A DNA stretch of 64,000 nucleotides, from positions 62,001-126,000 of the forward strand of contig MCFE01000111.1 of assembly GCA_002104905.1 (NCBI GenBank), read 5' to 3'. Of the stretch, positions 18,910-52,960 are shown piece after piece (position 1 is the first letter of the stretch; each line of letters opens with the position of its first letter). The notes under the pieces are model-generated. The model had not been told where the DNA came from. It made no database searches and was given only the letters and a program-made list of their open reading frames with translations. Origin of the DNA: Basidiobolus meristosporus CBS 931.73. Lineage: Eukaryota > Fungi > Basidiobolomycota. A program made the position numbers and the translations under genes.

Positions 18910-20580
18910 ATGAGTCTGTCATAATGCCAGCAGCTTGGAACTACTGACCCTCTACATGTTGTGATGATAGGATTGTGACAGTGTATGCCTGATTTTACTA
19001 CCAAATAAAGTTAAAAGCCTGATGTTGTTTGGGTGGCCTTTTGAAACAAATTGCATGGAATTCTGATGGTCTTTATGCATTCTACATTTATTTAAGCTGT
19101 CCTAACCAGTCAATACATCCAATTGCCTTATGTGGCAAGAAACTTGGCAGCATTTGGATAGCCTCATAGCAAACCTCTGCTGGCATTATGATGGCTGTAC
19201 AGTGGCCAACCACTAGTTCTGTATAATTCAGTTGTGCTAATTTACCAAATGATATTGCCTTTTACTACCTCTCCTTGTGTATTCATATTATCACTTTCAA
19301 ATCACCCCTCTATAACTGTGTATCCACTACTACTTTTGGTATTCTATATGTAATTCAAATTAAAAAGGACTATAGCCTCCTGCTTACTACCTCTACATTT
19401 GTGCATGCCAATTGCAATTGACACACTTCTATTGCCTCAACTTAAAGTTTTTCAGTGCTATACTTGCAAAGTTGCCGTATGCCTTGTATTGCTAGTAACA
19501 TGTACACTTTACAAATATAGGCATGGTTGCTTCCACTCTTGCCATGAATGCATCTTGAATAGTTGCAAAGAGCCTGTTGGTATTAGCTATTATATTCCCC
19601 CTCTCTGCTGGATTCTAGTTCCCCTTATAGGTGCAGTCTAGCACTTGTTTGTGAATTCTGTGTCAATTGGTACACCAACTGCCTTGTGTCTAGGAGAAGC
19701 CCAGCATAGTTTGGTAAGGTTGTCCTATTATGAATTGGCCACTTGTTGTACCAAACCCTGGTTTGCATTACTTTACTTATTACCCTTGCATTGGGGCTGC
19801 TTAGCTTTTTAATGCCAATGGCATAGGTGTCTCCATGTGTGCATCTTTCCACAGTATTTTCCAGCTCTTCCTGGCTGTCCACTGTGTACCAACTCATCAC
19901 ATCCATTACACACTTGAAGGCAATATTCTTGATGAGATTGGGATATGGTAGTACTTGCAACTTGACTTGTCTTCTTATCTTCCTACACATCTGCTCCATA
20001 GGAAACTCCCAAAAGGTGAAGCAAGGTCCAATATTCTCAACACACCAAGCAAGATGGAGTAGCAAGTCGATACGGTTGCAGCAGAGATCTATGTATTCAG
20101 CTTTATGCTTGTAGTATTGCCGCTCAAATCATGTAACAAACCCTTTGCACAAAAGCCAAAGATGCTTCAAGCTGGCATTAGTGATCTGCTTCTAGATAAA
20201 TATTCCTCCAATGTCCACATATGACTCCCAATGCTTCCAATGTACTTGTGGTATAAGTGGCTTCAGAAGGCCACTTGAATAAATGCATATCCAGTTCATC
20301 TGGTTGTTGCACTTGTATTGTTGCATATGCATATGAATGTTGATTGGAGCCCATGAGAAGCACTTAGGGTAGTGGATACTCTGTTATATCTTGCCTATCC
20401 TTTCAATCTTCTCTGATATCTCAAAGGGCGTATTTAGCTTGAAATGCCCCATGTACTACTTGATCATCAGCATAGGTATATTGTTGAAAAGCAAATACAT
20501 TGCTCCCAGTGGAAAGCTTTTGCTCCAACAAATACCCTCTATCTAAGTATATCTGGCCCTACAAAATATTATTGTAATAA
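18910..20580 (-). mobile_element. En/Spm (CACTA/CMC)-like transposase remnant, inverted copy
   Basis: LHLAWCVENIGPCFTFWEFPMEQMC motif; reverse complement of ~22090-23770 at roughly 80% identity by eye. Confidence 0.75.
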
Positions 20581-21519: not shown

Positions 21520-23770
21520 AATCAAGCGCAAGCATATGCAATATATTTGATGGCCAACACTACAAACAGCAAAAAGGCAAGGTCTACTTTGAATGTATGT
21601 ATGACCATGCCTTTGCTTTAGCACTTGATGGACTCATATTAAACATGTACTCTACCAACAAATCCTGCTGGCCACTAACTCTCATCAGCCTGAATCTGCT
21701 GCCTATTTTACAGTATCAGAGCAAAAATCTGATAGTAGGCTCACTGGTATCAGGGCCTAAATCACTGTCCAATGGGGATAGCTACCTGTATCCATTGCTG
21801 GATGAATTTTGTGTGCTTTCCAGCAGGATAACAGTAAATTGCCATCATGTCAATGTACATGTTTTTCTGCATTGGAGATACCCCAGCTGTCAGCAAGATA
21901 GCCAGAGTTTCTGGGCACAATAGATGGTATTGCTGTTGAAGGTGTGAGATCCAGGGGATTTACTTCACAACTCAAATACATTGTTATCACCCAAACACCA
22001 ACACTAAGAACATCATCTTCCAGCAGAGACAACATACAGAAGTCAGCATACAGTTGTAGCAAAGTAGGCAAGCTATAAGCCATTGGCCAGAATATGGAAT
22101 CATTTGGTAACCAGAGATAATTGAGATAGTGAGTATCTATTAGAGCAAAAGCTTTACACTGGGAGCAATGCATTTACTTTGCAACAATATCCCCATACTG
22201 ATGGCTAAGTTGTACATGGGGCAGTTCAAGCTAAATCAGCACTTTGAGATACTGGAGGAACTTGAAAGAATTGGCAAGATATTACAAAGTATCTGCTACC
22301 CTAAGTACTTCTCACAGGCTCCAATCAATATTCATATGCATATGTGACAATAGAAATGCAAAGACTGGATGAACTGGATATGTATTTATTCAAGTGGTGT
22401 TCTGACGCCATTCCTACCAAGAGTACATTGGAAGCATTGGGAGTCATATGTGGACATTGCAGGAATATTTATCCAGAAGCAGATCACCAATGCCAACTGG
22501 ACACATCTATAGCTGTTGTGCAAGGAGTTTGTGATGAGATTTGAGTGGCTATACTATAAGCATAAAGCTGAATGCTTAGACCTTTGCCACTACTGTATCC
22601 ATTCTCTACTCCATCTTGCTTGGCATGTGAAGAATATTGGGCCTTGCTTCACCTTTTGGGAGTTTCCTATAGAGCAGATGTGTGGGGAGATAAGAAGACA
22701 AGTCAAGTTGCAGGTACTACCATATCCCAATCTCATCAAGAATATTATTTTCAAGTCTGTAGTGGATGTGATGAGTTGGTACATGGAGGATAGCCAGGAA
22801 GAGTTGGAAAATACTGAGGACAGATGTACACATGGAGATACCTATGCCTATGGTATTAAGAAGGTAAGCAGCCCCAATGTGTGGGTAATCAGTTAAGTAA
22901 TGCAAAGTTGAGTTGAGTGCAACAAGCAACTAATTTTTATTAGAAAAGCCCTACTAAAGTATGCTGGGTTTCTCTTGGTCACAAGCCAACTTCTACATCA
23001 TTAATATGGATTTCACACAAACAAGAGCTAGAAAACACCTATAAGGGGGAATAGAATCCAGCAGGGAGAAGGAATATATTGGCTAAATACCAAAAAGTTC
23101 TTTGCAAATATTCAGGAGGTATTCATGGCAGAAGTGGCAAAAACCAAGCATATGTTTGCAAGAAGTATATGTTACCAGCAGTACAAGGTATATGGCAACT
23201 TTGCAAGTATCACACAAAAAAGCCATAGAGCTGAGGTGATTGATGTATATCAATATCTTGCAACAGATGCGCATGTTTGTAGAGGTTAGTAAGCAGGAGG
23301 CCATAGTTTTTTTTGATTTGAACTATATATGGAATACCCCAGGTAGTAGAGGGTAAGCAAATAATGGGGGTGATTCTACAGTGGAATACATGAATTGCAC
23401 AAGGGGAGGTAGAAAAAGTAAATTCCATTTGGTAAATTGGTATAGTAGCATTTTACAGAACTAGCTGTAGGCTGCTATACTACCATTATAATACCATCAA
23501 AGACTCACAATGAGGCTGTCAAACACTGTCAAGTATTTTGCCATATAAGGCAACTGGATGTACTGGCCAGTTAGATCCATTTAAAATAGTTGTAGAGTGC
23601 ATTAAGACTGCAACAATGTCATGCATTATTGCTACAGCACCAATTAAACCCCATCAGGTTTTTTAACTTTATTTAGCAGTAAAGTTAGCCAAACAACATT
23701 GTGATCCCGTCAGATGATTGTTAGGAGGGTCACTGATTCCAGGCTGCTGGTATTATGACAGTCTCCAAAC
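21520..23770 (+). mobile_element. En/Spm (CACTA/CMC)-like transposase remnant (Tnp2-type core)
   Basis: IFDGQHY, ALALDG, SCWPLTLISLNL, GPKSLSNGDSYLYPLLDEF and HSLLHLAWHVKNIGPCFTFWEFPIEQMCG resemble the Tnp2 (PF02992-type) family; stops and frameshifts; no CACTA termini seen. Confidence 0.75.
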
Positions 23771-29400: not shown

Positions 29401-30186
29401 ACCTCAGATTGGAATTCCTTGGAATTTTGAGCGTAACCTAAGTCATTCCATGATTAAGCTGGCCATCGCACGGAGAATCTGATTGAATTCAATACCTCCA
29501 CGACTCCTCGGCGGTGTGGCTAAACCGCTTCTACTAGGGTTTCGTTCATTTCTAATAAAGCTTGATGGATTTGTGGTTCCTTGGACGATTCTTCGTGTTA
29601 ACTCGCTGTTTACCGAGCCTGAGAGAAGCTACATCGGGTCGATTCCCAATAAGGGGGATTTTAGCATCAGACTTCACACTACACTCGACCAGACGCCATA
29701 CCTTTTTCTCGTTTTCGTCCAACGAAATACTAGCCATAGGCTGGAGACTTTCTTCACTCGTGACATATTCATGTCTTTCGAAATCCAGTGGCATAGGGAC
29801 GTGCTTATATAACGATAACATCAACTCTTTGGAGTATTTGAAAGGGTTAAGTTGATCGTCTAGATTTGATTCGGAAGTGTACCCTTTAAGCAGGTCCTCC
29901 GGGCTCTCTTGATTTAGAGTGTTCCGTCTAGAGGTGTTAGTGGCCGCGATGGTGGAATAGGTAAAGCTTCCTTGGGTTCCATTGACTCCTGGTGAAACCA
30001 AAGGAGATGTAGGTAGACTAGAGGTACTAAATGCACCTCGTGAATTCAAATCTAGAGCCCCCGGAGTAACTGGTTTGGATAATCGTCTCATCCTAAAAGG
30101 AGGGATGAGTTACATACGAAGCAGATTCCACATAATCGACATCGTGATTACCATTCGGGACCGAAATTCATGGTGTTGCTGGTCAT
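26470..30186 (-). CDS. SMY2: GYF-domain protein (GIGYF/Smy2-like), multi-exon; possible 1-nt frameshift near the C-terminus
   Basis: Exon 1 (30186-30152) spliced over a 59-nt intron gives MTSNTMNFGPEWMRR, the GIGYF-type NFGPEW start; GYF domain [28 protein letters not shown] split by an intron; C-terminal EFLNWCRNTL...FAFEYVKRRK. Confidence 0.88.
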
Positions 30187-31012
30187 ATTTAACAGATATC
30201 TGTAGGGTTCGGGGAGAGCAAAAATGGGAATCGTTAGACCCAGTTGGTCAATTCGTGAAATATGTCTCGAAGGGGTTGGACGTTCGAAAGGGAAATACCT
30301 TGGAAGTGGTTTGTTTCGATTGTCGATAAGACGCAAAGAAGCAGTCAGAAGTTTCCTCACAAAAAATCTCCAAGACTTAATGATCCCGGTGATGAATGTT
30401 GATCTGAGGCCAAAATTTCACCAATGGTTGGCAAAAAAAAACTCCTTAGTAAATTTAATGTTCATCTCGGATCACATGATCCCGAGCATCAATCTGTTGC
30501 TAATTGGTTGTGTATGAAGTTTGTGTGCTGTTAATTTGAGAGCATTATTTCATGTGTAAAGCAACACAAATCAGATACTCTCAGGCAGTGGTACAAAATT
30601 CCCAACCTTAGCCCACTGATGCGTAGCGTAACATCAATTCTATGCAAAGGTCTGGCCCATGATGCCTCTAAATTAGATAGAATGAGCTTTATTTTCGATT
30701 AGGGATTAGCCTAGCTGGCACTCGCTCGTTGTGTTCTTGGTCGTGCCTCTCTCGGTGGTCAATCACGTGTGTATTTTATGGGGTTTCTAGGGTGTTATCA
30801 TAGGGGTGGCTGAGGGGGAAGTAGCACTGGTGTGGCGTAGAGAGACTCTACATCCACACCCATGTCCACAACACATCAAGCCAATTTATCACAAGTCATT
30901 TACATCGAGTTCCAGTTTTCCATTCTTCTTCGACGGTCATTCATCCAGCAAATATACACAGCACCCCATCCCGCGGACAGAATCACGGTTGATCATCTCA
31001 ACAAGCAGTCAC

Positions 31013-31453
31013 TTATCTGCCAGAGTCGGAGATTGGCTCGGCGGCCTCTTTCCTCATCTGAGTCACCTTCTTCTCCATGTTCTGGAGCATCACGTCGAAC
31101 TTCTGCTTCAGTGACTCGCGAATAGGTTGACCCTCAGGCTTGACATTAGGCTGGACATCCTCGGCCCAAGCAGACGCGACCTTCTCCTTGAAGGTCGGCG
31201 AGGCCTCGGAGTCCATGCCACCCATATTCATAGGCTTGGACATGGACATGGGCATGGGCGCGGGCGCGAGAGCTGGCTTTGCAGAGTCAGTAGCCTCGAC
31301 ACTTTTGATTGTGGCGGTGGTTGTCTCAGTCCCCGGCTGATCAGGTACATTCTTCATGACTGCAGTGATCTCGAACGGCATCGCCTCAGCAGCGAGCATC
31401 CAGGACGACGACACGACGACAATGGAGAGAAGAGCGACGGCAGAGAGACGCAT
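31013..31453 (-). CDS. Orphan 146-aa secreted protein, copy 1
   Basis: Single-exon ORF with signal-peptide-like MRLSAVALLSIVVVSSSWMLAAEA; Pro/Thr/Met-rich middle, helical charged C-terminus; TATATA upstream. Confidence 0.8.
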   Translation of the reverse strand: MRLSAVALLSIVVVSSSWMLAAEAMPFEITAVMKNVPDQPGTETTTATIKSVEATDSAKPALAPAPMPMSMSKPMNMGGMDSEASPTFKEKVASAWAEDVQPNVKPEGQPIRESLKQKFDVMLQNMEKKVTQMRKEAAEPISDSGR

Positions 31454-32162
31454 GGTTGACGGATCGGCTGAAGTGGCAAGTTACTAAGAGTTATCGAATG
31501 AGTTGGGTTGAGCAACGAAGAAGCAGGATAGTGCGGGAGGTGCAGAGCGGGTTAGGTTAGTGAACTGGTTATCGTTGAATACGACAGTGCTTTTGCTAAC
31601 CATGGAGTATAGAGACTATATATGCCTGACGGGAGGGTATTTACAGTACCCATGATCATGGGTATACCAGAGCTCTCAGAGCAACGATCTGTAAGTTTCA
31701 ACGCATGCACAATCATTTCAACAAACAGATTGACAGCAGTTGGATGCAAATCGAGTGTTCTGGGGACTAAAACAATCTTAATGCACGTTAACTGTAATAC
31801 CATTCCATTTTATGATTTGCATAGTCGTTTAGATGATACTTTATTCTAAGTGAATTAGTCAAATATTTATATCCGAATGCTGTCATTTTGTTTGTTGAAA
31901 TGATTGTGCATGCGTTGAAACTTACAGATCGTTGCTCTGAGAGCTCTGGTATACCCATGATCATGGGTACTGTAAATACCCTCCCGTCAGGCATATATAG
32001 TCTCTATACTCCATGGTTAGCAAAAGCACTGTCGTATTCAACGATAACCAGTTCACTAACCTAACCCGCTCTGCACCTCCCGCACTATCCTGCTTCTTCG
32101 TTGCTCAACCCAACTCATTCGATAACTCTTAGTAACTTGCCACTTCAGCCGATCCGTCAACC

Positions 32163-32603
32163 ATGCGTCTCTCTGCCGTCGCTCTTCTCTCCATTGTCGT
32201 CGTGTCGTCGTCCTGGATGCTCGCTGCTGAGGCGATGCCGTTCGAGATCACTGCAGTCATGAAGAATGTACCTGATCAGCCGGGGACTGAGACAACCACC
32301 GCCACAATCAAAAGTGTCGAGGCTACTGACTCTGCAAAGCCAGCTCTCGCGCCCGCGCCCATGCCCATGTCCATGTCCAAGCCTATGAATATGGGTGGCA
32401 TGGACTCCGAGGCCTCGCCGACCTTCAAGGAGAAGGTCGCGTCTGCTTGGGCCGAGGATGTCCAGCCTAATGTCAAGCCTGAGGGTCAACCTATTCGCGA
32501 GTCACTGAAGCAGAAGTTCGACGTGATGCTCCAGAACATGGAGAAGAAGGTGACTCAGATGAGGAAAGAGGCCGCCGAGCCAATCTCCGACTCTGGCAGA
32601 TAA
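32163..32603 (+). CDS. Orphan 146-aa secreted protein, copy 2 (identical to copy 1)
   Basis: Identical translation; TATATA at ~31995 and AATAAA at 32922-32927. Confidence 0.8.
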   Translation: MRLSAVALLSIVVVSSSWMLAAEAMPFEITAVMKNVPDQPGTETTTATIKSVEATDSAKPALAPAPMPMSMSKPMNMGGMDSEASPTFKEKVASAWAEDVQPNVKPEGQPIRESLKQKFDVMLQNMEKKVTQMRKEAAEPISDSGR

Positions 32604-33093
32604 GTGACTGCTTGTTGAGATGATCAACCGTGATTCTGTCCGCGGGATGGGGTGCTGTGTATATTTGCTGGATGAATGACCGTCGAAGAAGAATGGAAAA
32701 CTGGAACTCGATGTAAATGACTTGTGATAAATTGGCTTGATGTGTTGTGGACATGGGTGTGGATGTAGAGTCTCTCTACGCCACACCAGTGCTACTTCCC
32801 CCTCAGCCACCCCTATGATAACACCCTAGAAACCCCATAAAATACACACGTGATTGACCACCGAGAGAGGCACGACCAAGAACACAATGAGCGAGTGCCA
32901 GCTAGGCTAATCCCTAATCGAAAATAAAGTAAATCCTATCTAACTATAGTATATTAGGTGATTGGATAGTAGATCATGAAAAAAATGATTTATTTGTGAT
33001 TATGCCAGCAAGTCATCAATCTCAAGACTGATGGTGGGAATTGTGGTTATTCGCGAGAGTGGGGAAGAAAAATCACTCGGGCAATTCTAAAAT

Positions 33094-34930: not shown

Positions 34931-36897
34931 TCAGCGCCATTTGGCCAAGAGGAAGCCTAGGGCGGCTGCTACTACAACTCCACCAGCAACTCCGAAAGCG
35001 ACTTCGTTGGAAAGGGTAGCCTTAGGGTCAGGCTTGTCATGGCTTAGTGAGCTCATATGCTCAGAGAGGTCCATGTCGAAAGTGTGTTCTTTGTAAGCAT
35101 CCTTGGGCAAGACTAAAACCACGAGCCTATTAGTTCCTTGAGCCCGGGACATCTCAACAGCATCCTCGAGTTCTTCATCAGTATTCAACGCCACTAGGTC
35201 TTTTTCGTCATCAATGTAGGCAGTCTCAAACTCTTCTATCTCTAGTTTGCTCTTTATCTTGCTACGAAGCGCTGTCAGATCGTAAGCATCGCTGACCACT
35301 CTATGAACCTTTTCCTCCTCTTCTTGCACCCCATATACCCGCAGTTTGAATAGAAACATTCCCGACTGGAGCAGGCGCGAAGTGATCAGAACGGTCGATT
35401 TGGATTCATTATGTAGAGTAGAAGCCGAGTCATGTGGATATAACTCTGGAGAATGCTCCACTTCCATAGACTCAGGTTCCTGGGTGAAAATGGATGCAGC
35501 ATGTGGAATCCCGGAGGTGACAACTGACTGAGAATCGTCATCGTTGAACGAGCAGAAGAGCTTGCCCCAGATACTGTCTCCATTGGTTTCGGAGTTCTCG
35601 TGTTCCATGCTGTTCAGCTAAGAGACCAAATCAAGCAGAGTTAGAATTTATCAGTCGCGCAGCGGAGAAACAATGCATTGTTTACCGCCTCAAGAGTAAC
35701 GTATGTCAATTTCAAAATATCCAGCATTCCCACGACGTCGCCAAATTCGCTCACCACTGGCAAATTCATGAAATGGCCCTCTGGAGTAAAAGGTCAGGTT
35801 TGGGTAGTTTAGGGTCATCGATTGGGCATGCCCACATACCGTTCATCTTTTTTAAGGCCTCCACAACAGTCATATTCAGTGGAGCACAATCCGGGTGCGG
35901 AGTCATCACTCTAACCACGCTGCAGTTCGACGGGTCAAGCCCAGCAGCTATGACCCTAAGCACAATATCCTTCGTGGTGAATATTCCAACTATCTGGCTT
36001 TCCTCAGTGACCAACACTGCGGTGGACTTCTCCTTCTTCATCAATCTTGCCGCCTCCTTGACACTGGTCTTTGGAGTTACTTCTGGTGGCTGCACACCAT
36101 CGATTAGGTTGGCCAATGTAGGGCATGAAATCTTTTCTTTCAACAGATCCATGAATTGAAACATCGACACAGTCACATTGGAATTGTTGATTGGCCACTC
36201 TTTGCCCATCCCTTCGATGGCATCCACCAGTTTTTTGCTTGTGCCGTAGGCTCTGTCCAGTTTTTTCAAAACCTCTAGTAGACACTTCGTGATGTCTAGC
36301 AAGCCCACCACATCCCCCTCAAGGTTGCATACTGGCAAATGACGGAACCCCTTGGTAGTCATGGTGTTCAGTGCCTCTATGGCGCTTGTATCACTGGTGA
36401 CGCATAATGGACGACGAGTCATTATATCACTGACCCTGGTATTCCGTGGATCGATTCCTTCACTTATCACTTTACAAGCCAAGTCGACCGAGGTAAATAT
36501 CCCACTCAGGTGCTCCTCAGAATCCACCACCAGTACGCTATCCATGCGCTTGGCAGCCATCAGCTGGGCTGCCTCCGTCACTAGGATATTCTCTTGGACT
36601 GTCAAGGCTTGTTGCGGTCTTAGGCTAGATACAGTCCCAGGGGTTCGCTGGCTCTTCGAGGAGCGAGATTTAAGACTTTTCTTTCGCGACAATTCTTGCT
36701 CAACTTTTCTGCGTATAGCCTGCCAAGCGACATTAGAAACTTAGTGGAAATATACTCCATACAAGACCTACCTCATCTCGTTTTGACACTCTGCTACGGG
36801 CCTTTGTGCTTCTTCCCGGATCGGGTAGAGTGGAATTATCGGCGCTTGAGGAGGTGTTTTGATGGTTAGAACGTCTAGAGACTGAGTGATAGGTCAT
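34931..36897 (-). CDS. CBS-CBS-PB1 domain protein with C-terminal transmembrane anchor (S. pombe Mug70-like), multi-exon
   Basis: Spliced N-terminus SKRDEAIRRKVEQEL; two CBS pairs (FRHLPV, GIFTTKDIVLRV); PB1 acidic motif AYIDDEKDLVALNTDEEL; terminal hydrophobic helix. Confidence 0.88.
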
Positions 36898-48889: not shown

Positions 48890-50413
48890 CTAGAAGCGGG
48901 ATAGATCGCACTCGGTCAACTTCACGATCTTGGTCTTGTTGATGATTTTGTACCCGAAGTAGAGTACGGCAAAGATGATGATGGCAAGGTAACCACCAAT
49001 ACACACGCCCCAGTCGAAATGACCATTGGTGTATGCTTCATACCCTTGCCCGCCAAGAACAACTGCGCACAGGACAAATGCGAGAATGGGGCCGAATGGG
49101 TACAGGCGGGCTCTGTATGGCAATTCGTCCAAAGAATGCCCCTGAGCGAGGAATGCTTTACGGAAACGATAGTGGCTCACTGCAATTCCGATCCAGGCAA
49201 TGAAGCCTGAGGTACTGGAGGCACGCAAAAGCCACATGTAGATGACACCGTTCCCGAAGAGGGATGTCAGAAACGCCAAGCACCCAACAACAGCGGTAAG
49301 GATCAGAGCGTGCATGGGAACCCCGCGTGAGTTCACCCGACCGAAAATCTTGGGGGCCATGTTGGAGTTGGCCATCATCCATAGAGTGCGGGTGCATGCA
49401 TAAAGAGCAGAGTTTCCAGCGGAGAGGACAGTGATGAGGATAATGGCGTTCATAACGTCCGACGCAGGGCCAAGGCCAGCAAGTTTGAAGACCAAGGTGA
49501 AGGGAGAAATGGCAACGTCCTGGACACTACCCGAACTCACCAGGTTGGGGTCTGTGTAGGGAATGAGGAAGCTGATGATCATAATGGCGCCAATATAGAA
49601 GAGCAGGATTCTCCAGAAAACCTGTTTGATGGCGGTTGGAACGTTCTTCTCCGGGTTTTCGCTCTCTCCGGCGGCCACTCCAACCAACTCGGTTCCCATG
49701 AAAGAGAAACCGGCAACCAAGAAAACGCCCAGCGTGCCGAGTGCGCCATCTACGAAGGGGGCATCACCCAAGGTGAAATTTCTGGTACCGTACTTCACAC
49801 CACCAAGGACACCGGTAGCAACAAATATACCAATGATAATGAAGATCACGACGGTTACTACCTTGATCAGAGCAAACCAGTATTCTGCTTCGCCGTATCC
49901 CTTCACGGAAATAGAGTTGATCCCCACGATGATCACCAGCAAGCAGGCACTCCATACCCAGTTCGGAACATGAGGGAGCCAGTATTGCATGATCAGACCT
50001 CCAGCAGAAAGCTCCACCGCAACGGTCAGAGCCCATGAATACCAGTAGTTCCAACTGAGAGCAAATCCGAAGGCTGGGTCAACAAAGCGAGCACCGTAAG
50101 CATTGAAAGAGCCCGAGATTGGCATGTAGGTGGCCATCTCCCCCAGACTGGTCATCAGGAAGAACACCATGATGCCGATTAGTCCGTAGCCAAGTAGAGC
50201 ACCACCAGGTCCTCCGGTAGCGATAGAAGCACCGCTGGCAAGGAAAAGGCCCGTACCGATGGTACCTCCGATAGAAATCATCGATAGATGGCGCCCCTTT
50301 AGCGATCTTCTGAGTTCGGCTTTCTCGCCCTCGATGCTGCAGCTCTCCAGCTCGGCTAGCTTCTCGGGGTCTTTTAAGTGGGATTGTTGGGTAAACGATC
50401 GCTCGGCTTCCAT
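48890..50413 (-). CDS. APC-superfamily amino acid permease, LysP-like, intronless (copy 1)
   Basis: RHLSMISIGGTIGTGLF, GEAEYWF, GFSFMGTELVGVAAGES; likely ATG at 50413 (MEAERSF), 507 aa. Confidence 0.93.
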   Translation of the reverse strand: MEAERSFTQQSHLKDPEKLAELESCSIEGEKAELRRSLKGRHLSMISIGGTIGTGLFLASGASIATGGPGGALLGYGLIGIMVFFLMTSLGEMATYMPISGSFNAYGARFVDPAFGFALSWNYWYSWALTVAVELSAGGLIMQYWLPHVPNWVWSACLLVIIVGINSISVKGYGEAEYWFALIKVVTVVIFIIIGIFVATGVLGGVKYGTRNFTLGDAPFVDGALGTLGVFLVAGFSFMGTELVGVAAGESENPEKNVPTAIKQVFWRILLFYIGAIMIISFLIPYTDPNLVSSGSVQDVAISPFTLVFKLAGLGPASDVMNAIILITVLSAGNSALYACTRTLWMMANSNMAPKIFGRVNSRGVPMHALILTAVVGCLAFLTSLFGNGVIYMWLLRASSTSGFIAWIGIAVSHYRFRKAFLAQGHSLDELPYRARLYPFGPILAFVLCAVVLGGQGYEAYTNGHFDWGVCIGGYLAIIIFAVLYFGYKIINKTKIVKLTECDLSRF

Positions 50414-51442
50414 GTTGTGTGTATTAAGGGGCACTGTACAGCAGAGCGTGTGAGTAATTCTAGTCTTGAGAATATGAAACTGCGAGGAGACTCTCACGGC
50501 ATTTATAAGAAACCAGAGATTCCTCGACCGTAACCCTGGGGTTGGACAGAAAAAGAGAGGGAGATATGCCATAAACGGTACATGTCAGGCTACCATTTGT
50601 CCTCTGGATATTTTCTAGACCAAATGCAACCCAATTACCCTGTGGCTTCTGCTCTGAACAACCCAATTACCCTTAACCATCTACGAGGAATACCAAAAAA
50701 AGCCATGTATCGACCAATATGGAAGTACCTTGGACGAAAAGTATAACATGTGAGGAATTTTCTGGCCAGGAAAGGAATTTTCAACTTTGGCCTGGATAGA
50801 TCAGGATGACTCACGGAGCAGTTGTTACAAATCCATGGATTCATAATGGTTACCATAGGGGGCATTATTTATTGTCAATATGCTCGCACTTTTTATTTGC
50901 TGTACGGCTCAGCAACGTTACGGGAAAGCGGCTTAATTAACTGATCGCTGATAAGCCTAATGCAAGGGTTGATGAGCATGTTTGGAAGGTTGCTTCGAAA
51001 ACATTCTCCATGTGATTGCTCGAAAGGGAATTCGTGACAATAGAACATTCCTCCCACACCGAAAAGTCACCCAACCCAACGAAAAGTCTACATGTGAGCG
51101 ATGGAAGGTGATTAAAATGGACAAGTGAAATTTTCTTCGCTTATCTACAGAGGTTAATGGTGCTGGCCAATTGCTACTGTTACTACCGTTCACTCTGCTA
51201 ATCCATGATCTCTCAGGCGAAGGATTTAAGTTAATATTGGTTCCCATATCAGGCATGGTGCTAGTCGACAAATCTAAAATAAGCTTTTGCCTTGTCATCC
51301 ATCCACTTCATTAAAGTCAGTTGACTGGAATTAAACTTCCTGAAGTGAGACCCCTCCCTCCACCCATTCGGTTCCTATAAAAAAGCATCCGTCACCGTCT
51401 CAGAGACCCAACAACCCTTCTATTGATTATAACTAATTCACA

Positions 51443-52960
51443 ATGGGAGGAGATATAGAGCTACAAACTAATACCTATTTCACAGAACAGAAGAAGACCC
51501 TCGATGTTGAAAGCAACTATCCTGAATCGACAGAGGGTGGGGGAGGGCTCAGAAGAACACTAAAGGCGCGTCACCTGTCCATGATTTCCATCGGCGGAAC
51601 CATCGGAACCGGGCTTTTCCTGGCCAGTGGTCTTTCCATCAGCAATGGTGGACCTGGTGGTGCTCTGCTCGCCTATTCTCTAATTGGTATGATGGTGTTC
51701 TTTATGATGACCAGTCTGGGCGAGATGGCCACGTACATCCCCGTTTCTGGTTCATTCAACACATATGGTGCCCGCTTCGTCGACCCGGCCTTTGGATTCG
51801 CCCTCAGTTGGAACTACTGGTACTCATGGGCACTCACGGTGGCGGTGGAGCTTTCGGCGTCGGGCCTGATCATGAAATACTGGTTTCGGGATGTCCCCAG
51901 CTGGGTGTGGAGTGCCAGCGTTTTGGTGATCATCATAGCAATCAACTCATTCTCCGCGAGAGGATACGGCGAGGCGGAGTACTGGTTCGCCTTGATCAAA
52001 GTCATCACCGTGGTCGTGTTTATCATAGTAGGCATATTTGTTGCTGCCGGTGTTCTCGGAGGCGTCAAGTACGGGTTCCAAAACTTCACCAAGGGAGAAG
52101 CCCCATTTGTGAACGGTGGGCTTGGTGTCCTCAGTGTCTTTCTGCTGGCCGGGTTCTCTTTCATGGGAACAGAGCTGGTAGGCGTGGCTGCCGGTGAAAG
52201 TGAAAACCCGGAGAAGAACATCCCCAAGGCTATCAAGCAAGTTTTCTGGCGTATTTTACTCTTCTACATTGGCGCAATCTTCATCATCGGCCTATTGATT
52301 CCATATGACGATCCTTTGTTAACCAGCGAGGATGTCCAGACCTCTCCCTTCACCCTTGGCTTTAAGCTTGCTGGCCTTGGATTCGCCCCCGATGTCATGA
52401 ATGCCATTATACTGATTACAGTTCTCTCGGCCGGAAATTCTGCCCTCTATGCATGCACTCGAACTCTATGGACCATGTCCCATTCAAACATGGCCCCCAA
52501 GATCTTTGGCCGCATCAATTCTCGAGGTGTGCCCATGTACGCAATGCTACTTACTGCTGCGTTCGGGTGCCTTGCTTTCCTAACATCGTTATTCGGAGAT
52601 GAAGTTGTATACGAATGGCTACTCAAGGCTTCCGGCACCTCCGGGTTTCTCGCCTGGGTTGGAATTGCTGTCAGCCACCTCCGATTCCGTAGAGCATTCA
52701 TCGCACAAGGTCACACACTTGATGAGCTTCCTTACCGCGCCAAATTGTATCCGTTTGGCCCTATAGTCGCTCTGTTACTTTGCATAGTGGTGATAGCCGG
52801 ACAGGGCATCAATGCCTACTCTAACGGCAAGTTCGATTTCCTTCAGGCTTTCGGAGAATACCTAGCCGTCATCTTGTTCGCGATCCTGTATCTTGGATTC
52901 AAGATCATCAAGAAAACCAAAGTCGTTCCACTAACCCAGTGCGATTTTAGCCGAACCTAG
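51443..52960 (+). CDS. APC-superfamily amino acid permease, LysP-like, intronless (copy 2)
   Basis: Paralog of copy 1 in divergent orientation; same motifs; 505 aa. Confidence 0.93.
   Translation: MGGDIELQTNTYFTEQKKTLDVESNYPESTEGGGGLRRTLKARHLSMISIGGTIGTGLFLASGLSISNGGPGGALLAYSLIGMMVFFMMTSLGEMATYIPVSGSFNTYGARFVDPAFGFALSWNYWYSWALTVAVELSASGLIMKYWFRDVPSWVWSASVLVIIIAINSFSARGYGEAEYWFALIKVITVVVFIIVGIFVAAGVLGGVKYGFQNFTKGEAPFVNGGLGVLSVFLLAGFSFMGTELVGVAAGESENPEKNIPKAIKQVFWRILLFYIGAIFIIGLLIPYDDPLLTSEDVQTSPFTLGFKLAGLGFAPDVMNAIILITVLSAGNSALYACTRTLWTMSHSNMAPKIFGRINSRGVPMYAMLLTAAFGCLAFLTSLFGDEVVYEWLLKASGTSGFLAWVGIAVSHLRFRRAFIAQGHTLDELPYRAKLYPFGPIVALLLCIVVIAGQGINAYSNGKFDFLQAFGEYLAVILFAILYLGFKIIKKTKVVPLTQCDFSRT

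Follow-up and report, generated by a model that had tools for sequence, protein, structure and literature searches.

This report concerns a 64,000-nucleotide stretch of the genome of the fungus Basidiobolus meristosporus CBS 931.73 (contig MCFE01000111.1, positions 62,001 to 126,000 of the forward strand; hereafter the window, with positions counted from its first base) and, within it, a long palindrome that carries two copies of a small protein-coding gene. The palindrome is a head-to-head inverted duplication of one complete gene, taking in its promoter region, coding sequence (CDS) and 3' flank, and we regard it as very probably biological in origin. Each arm contains 274 bp 5' of the start codon, an intact, intronless open reading frame (ORF) of 146 codons and 326 bp 3' of the stop codon. 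The two ORFs are identical, bearing out the proposal of the initial annotation that the palindrome holds a pair of complete, identical and divergently transcribed genes. The features of the palindrome are as follows, with copies L and R denoting those in the left and right arms:

30673–30686: outer-left degenerate edge, mirroring 32930–32943 at 10 of 14 positions, including a perfect 8-mer
30687–31727, minus strand: left arm, 1041 bp, containing the 3' flank, CDS and 5' flank of copy L
30728: sole mismatch between the arms, G (in CG) against T (in TG) at 32888
31013–31453, minus strand: CDS of copy L, 146 codons plus stop, encoding protein P0001
31229–31259, minus strand: hexanucleotide repeat of about five units encoding the methionine-rich PMPMSMSKPMNM stretch, copy L
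31617–31622, minus strand: TATA-like box of copy L, mirror of 31994–31999
31647–31664: 18-bp perfect palindrome TACCCATGATCATGGGTA, copy L
31728–31888: spacer, 161 bp, with 24 nt at either end that continue the arm in decayed form (18 of 24 positions)
31889–32929, plus strand: right arm, 1041 bp, containing the 5' flank (274 bp), CDS and 3' flank (326 bp) of copy R
31952–31969: 18-bp perfect palindrome, copy R
31994–31999, plus strand: TATA-like box of copy R (TATATA), about 165 bp upstream of the ATG
32163–32603, plus strand: CDS of copy R, identical to that of copy L
32923–32928, plus strand: AATAAA, followed by the last nt of the right arm
32930–32943: outer-right degenerate edge

A repeat search of the 29–35 kb region of the window reported one inverted pair, 30673–31751 against 31865–32943 (1079 nt, 99% identity). 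When mirrored bases were compared one by one outwards from the centre at 31808 (a mirror walk), the palindrome resolved into a core, an inner zone and an outer zone. In the near-perfect core (30687–31727 against 31889–32929) the 1041-bp arms are 99.9% identical and differ at a single position, 30728 being G where 32888 is T. The site belongs to the 3' flank, 285 nt beyond the stop codon, and on the gene strand copy L has CG there and copy R has TG. The 161-bp spacer between the core arms is asymmetric and AT-rich, with a G+C (GC) content of 33%. Arm coordinates, arm length, spacer length and the lone CG to TG change at 32888 had all been given correctly in the initial annotation, which was also right to place a TATA-like box, a 146-codon ORF and a near-terminal AATAAA in each arm; the arm ends 1 nt past the AATAAA, however, rather than 2.

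Weaker mirror similarity extends beyond both ends of the core arms. In the inner zone, 31728–31751 matches 31865–31888 at 18 of 24 positions (shuffle p<1e-5) and in the outer zone 30673–30686 matches 32930–32943 at 10 of 14 (shuffle p=0.0014), so that the recognisable inverted repeat consists of 1079-bp arms around a 113-bp centre. Identity across these edges is about 74% (28/38) against 99.9% in the core, although the informative edge amounts to only 38 bp. Both zones include a perfect 8-mer, lying 3 nt from the arm end in the inner zone and 6 nt from it in the outer, and the intervening bases are mismatched at two of three and four of six positions, respectively. The mirror walk found no symmetry beyond the outer zone, and the 113-bp core of the spacer has no clear symmetry either. 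Gapped self-complementarity of the whole spacer is marginal (score 14 against −9 ± 8 for shuffles, maximum 18) and stems from the 24-nt edges; we do not claim that the spacer as a whole is a decayed palindrome. When an arm was compared by BLAST with the entire window, its partner arm was the sole match, and both flanks are unique.

The start codons of the two copies lie 709 bp apart, and the identical 274-bp proximal promoters are arranged around the shared spacer. A TATATA sequence is found about 165 bp upstream of each ATG and, 25 bp further upstream, the 18-bp perfect palindrome TACCCATGATCATGGGTA (31647–31664 and 31952–31969), the 14-bp core of which has exact matches at those two sites only within the 64-kb window. 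This 18-bp element is a candidate site for a dimeric regulator. The two copies, equally regulated, would share a single 709-bp bidirectional upstream region, and the expected consequence would be co-regulation and up to twice the transcript output. The dosage doubling proposed in the initial annotation, and its view that the duplicated unit is close to exactly one transcription unit, are thus putative.

Three observations support the reality of the duplicated gene: NCBI and UniRef already list its product, P0001, as a predicted protein, it has a homologue in Basidiobolus ranarum with conserved parts, and its GC content at third codon positions (GC3) is 0.70, the highest among the window genes checked (0.55–0.65). 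A codon adaptation index (CAI)-like measure fails to separate the true frame from the alternative frames in so short a gene, and coding status rests on the B. ranarum homologue. This homologue, P0002, is the sole true relative of P0001 identified by an exhaustive HMMER search of 1.84 billion representative proteins. It is 128 amino acids long (KAK9711096.1 / K7432_008049, "hypothetical protein [Basidiobolus ranarum]") and 44% identical to P0001 by BLASTP. A word-indexed protein search with P0001 recovered only P0001 itself, and a profile built from P0001 and P0002 detected no further relative either among proteins or in a metagenome scan. The full HMMER search contained no true prokaryotic relative, the one bacterial match (P0003) being a spurious hit to a threonine-rich repeat protein. 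No Pfam family matched P0001 at E≤0.01 (the best, DUF6425, scored 15.7 bits, under the 25-bit cut-off), no relative was found in the PDB and the ESM Atlas yielded no usable neighbour, all structural neighbours having template modelling (TM) scores of 0.33 or below.

The 146-residue P0001 begins with a signal-peptide-like N-terminus, recognised by inspection and from a helix at residues 4–23 in the AlphaFold2 model. The mature protein (residues 25–146) would be acidic (isoelectric point 5.2) and of about 13 kDa, with 9% methionine, no cysteine and no histidine. P0001 does not belong to the small secreted cysteine-rich proteins of fungi, which have several disulfide-forming cysteines: it has the signal-peptide-like N-terminus but no cysteine at all in its mature part. 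Between P0001 and P0002, conservation covers the signal-peptide-like N-terminus, a PFEITAVM-N-PD motif at the mature start and a C-terminal helix (…SLK-KF--MLQNMEKKV…), with the middle of the protein variable. Mean predicted local distance difference test (pLDDT) score in the AlphaFold2 model is 52.5, and only the N-terminal helix and a C-terminal helix (109–138, pLDDT 78–87) are ordered. Taken together, P0001 is a Basidiobolus-restricted, probably secreted and largely disordered protein with a conserved C-terminal helix.

Within the variable middle, the B. meristosporus protein carries a methionine-rich insert, PMPMSMSKPMNMGGM, encoded by about five hexanucleotide units at 32357–32387 (mirrored at 31229–31259), which to judge from the coding repeat looks like microsatellite-type growth. 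Methionine motifs are the basis for the idea of Cu(I) binding, and it is a matter of speculation that the MxM motifs of the insert might bind this ion. The insert is absent from the B. ranarum homologue, which weakens any Cu(I) role as a function of the whole family.

How did two arms of more than 1 kb come to be virtually identical? The initial annotation pointed to gene conversion between the arms, which is a reasonable explanation, and we lean modestly towards conversion, rather than mere youth, as the explanation. The duplication would then be older than the 99.9% identity of the arms suggests. The original repeat would have spanned at least 1079 bp, intrachromosomal arm-to-arm conversion would have held the 1041-bp core identical, and the outermost 14–24 bp, rarely reached by conversion tracts, would have drifted to their present level of identity. 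The mismatched bases between each 8-mer and the perfect arm fit an eroding conversion boundary of this kind and are unlike a simple microhomology junction.

Several observations weigh against conversion. The decayed edges are short, 38 bp in total, and could be short inverted repeats that were there beforehand and gave a recent fold-back or template switch its priming site, with error-prone synthesis then taking place close to the junctions. In B. ranarum one homologue is annotated, under one accession, which taken at face value places the duplication after the split between the two species, although the B. ranarum assembly is fragmented (the contig is 14 kb). Finally, the GC content of the non-coding parts of the arms (0.46–0.48) is within or slightly above the typical intergenic range (0.32–0.48) and so provides no clear signature of GC-biased conversion. 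The GC3 of 0.70, being that of one gene, is no test of this.

A less favoured, tentative alternative is that the inverted duplication is very recent and that the arms, being young, have had no time to diverge, without any conversion. By this route, a replication template switch or fold-back priming event would have taken place where an imperfect 24-bp inverted repeat already flanked the 113-bp core, and the gene unit would have been copied in reverse upon a further switch back, made at the outer 8-mer. Short imperfect inverted repeats do lie exactly at the inner junctions, with an 8-mer at the outer junction; the arms differ at one position in 1041 bp, and the single annotated B. ranarum homologue is as expected. 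In yeast, fold-back priming at short inverted repeats is an established mechanism by which inverted duplications arise (PMC10622511). However, perfect identity fails to start at the microhomology, where a clean template switch would have copied the intervening bases too, and simple fold-back would not lead one to expect similarity at the outer edge. The mismatched bases between 8-mer and arm could still stem from error-prone synthesis close to the junctions.

Two groups of known systems resemble the locus. Like the conversion-maintained palindromes of primate Y and X ampliconic regions and the small gene palindromes of other eukaryotes, it has inverted arms with intact genes and a short unique spacer, and its arms are much more alike (99.9% identity) than the decayed edges next to them. 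Unlike the primate Y and X palindromes, its arms are about 1 kb long, rather than 9 kb to 1.45 Mb, with one gene per arm at an autosomal-type fungal locus, and conversion is here deduced from 38 bp of edges alone, rather than from comparison across species. With fold-back and template-switch duplications (the foldback inversions of yeast and the duplication–inversion (DUP-INV) products of microhomology-mediated break-induced replication (MMBIR) and fork stalling and template switching (FoSTeS)) it shares short imperfect inverted repeats at the spacer–arm junctions and a small asymmetric loop between the arms. It differs from them in the mismatched bases that separate microhomology from perfect arm, and in being a neat interstitial duplication that keeps both original flanks, with no terminal rearrangement or triplication.

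A second head-to-head pair is present 18 kb away, where intronless amino-acid permease genes occupy 48890–50572 (minus strand) and 51443–52960 (plus strand). Both pairs are head-to-head inverted duplicates with a shared upstream region, but the permeases have diverged to 74% protein identity (76% DNA identity over 758 nt). The permease pair is an older inverted duplication of the same topology that has not been homogenised.

All of the above presumes that the palindrome exists in the cell. The CBS 931.73 assembly was built from PacBio reads only (PMC7466969), and a fold-back or chimeric read, or a mis-join, might in principle have mirrored a single-copy gene. We consider this unlikely, on several grounds. 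The palindrome lies well inside the sequence, flanked by 30 kb or more of the window on each side and by distinct, intact genes; its centre is a 161-bp asymmetric AT-rich spacer rather than a zero-length turning point; and the arm edges fade gradually instead of ending sharply. The arms also differ, by a CpG transition, which is a typically biological substitution. With 55 CpG dinucleotides in each arm, a random substitution would be a CpG transition in only about 3.5% of cases, and that the sole mismatch is one of these points to two physically distinct copies mutating biologically. A foldback artefact would be expected at a contig end, with arms that are identical and sharply bounded and a centre that is absent or symmetric, and none of this is seen here.

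CpG content sets the arms apart from the repeats of the window. The arms have an observed-to-expected CpG ratio of 0.81 and the surrounding gene space one of about 0.75, whereas the ratio falls to 0.05 in a block of transposable elements (TEs) at 1–26000. The CpG loss that methylation-driven decay, or a process like repeat-induced point mutation (RIP), would leave in duplicated DNA is not seen in the arms, and we reject that reading of the palindrome. The TE block includes a copia-type gag-pol ORF (1184–2731) and many repeats of 71–85% identity and shows an excess of TpG and CpA, the CpG ratio jumping sharply to about 0.75 at around 26 kb. Judged from these dinucleotides, the pattern suggests that methylation has driven CpG decay in TEs alone, as opposed to classical CpA-biased RIP, and the CpG-depleted transposons of B. 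meristosporus are presumably methylated. The same block contains an inverted repeat of its own, 19680–20544 / 22124–22988 (865 nt, 84% identity, with a 1.6-kb centre), that probably comprises two TE fragments or long terminal repeats (LTRs) in opposite orientation.

The initial annotation was therefore correct that the arms keep their CpGs. Its further suggestion, that the palindrome escapes repeat silencing, is unsupported as a special property, the CpG content of the arms being equal to that of single-copy gene space. CpG loss in the window is a property of the transposon block, and nothing in the window shows that two-copy genes are targeted; copies homogenised recently, or of recent origin, would in any case have had no time for CpG decay.

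The palindrome has different neighbours on its two sides, the spliced ones among them having been searched exon by exon. To the left is a minus-strand gene encoding a GYF-domain protein, with its ATG at 30091, 595 bp from the arm. To the right is the five-exon, minus-strand ADE1 gene (SAICAR synthase), with its stop codon at about 33097, some 165 bp beyond the right arm. Copy R and ADE1 are convergent, so their 3' ends must nearly abut, and read-through into the palindrome is geometrically possible. Further to the right lies a CBS-CBS-PB1 gene (35769–36740, minus strand, with a PB1 exon at 34934–35617). The only B. ranarum match to the CBS-PB1 exon within the length range of the search was a partial one, K7432_006478, at 58% identity as against 60% for Rhizopus, and this gene is not adjacent to K7432_008049. 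On these sequence matches, it would seem either that the two Basidiobolus species are very divergent or that the true orthologue is missing or outside the length range.

The proximity of ADE1 brings in a different reading of the palindrome, compatible with any of the origins discussed above, in which the duplication lowers expression rather than raising it: transcription running through both arms, as it might from ADE1, which converges on the palindrome from 165 bp away, would produce a 1-kb hairpin RNA, and the pair could then be silenced by RNA interference (RNAi). Inverted-repeat transgenes trigger RNAi in fungi, and the arms are 99.9% complementary, but what speaks for silencing here is geometry only, that is, the ADE1 stop codon at about 33097 and transcription of that gene towards the right arm. 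An AATAAA is found on the ADE1 strand about 100 nt past the ADE1 stop, ahead of the arm, and the ORF is intact in both copies. We think it improbable that the pair is silenced in this way.

A mobile element of the foldback type, with a gene caught by chance in its long terminal inverted repeats, would look alike in having long inverted arms around a short centre, but it can be dismissed as very improbable. Target-site duplications are absent from the boundaries at 30687/32929 and from those at 30673/32943, the window contains no other copy or fragment and no transposase was seen in it. The arms themselves are made up of a promoter, CDS and 3' flank of the ordinary kind and have the CpG content of genes, leading us to reject a foldback or terminal inverted repeat (TIR) transposon.

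The structure is thus a known type of duplication, and comparable small inverted gene duplicates are found in many eukaryotes; among the papers listed by our literature search, none of which contained the term Basidiobolus, there was no paper on palindromes in this genus. Considered alone, the locus is a textbook-type inverted gene duplication, probably undergoing concerted evolution, that encodes an orphan secreted protein. A much bolder proposal, which we regard as doubtful, is that B. meristosporus has a genome-wide habit of keeping many small secreted, surface or orphan genes as conversion-homogenised head-to-head palindromes, and that the methionine-rich insert of the present protein might bind Cu(I). 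If true, such a habit would be a fungal, small-scale counterpart of the ampliconic palindromes of sex chromosomes, and flipping of the spacer, together with shared bidirectional promoters, could speed copy-number and regulatory change in this gut-associated fungus. Should reads confirm gene-bearing palindromes, a genome-wide study of how they form and persist in an early-diverging fungus would be worthwhile.

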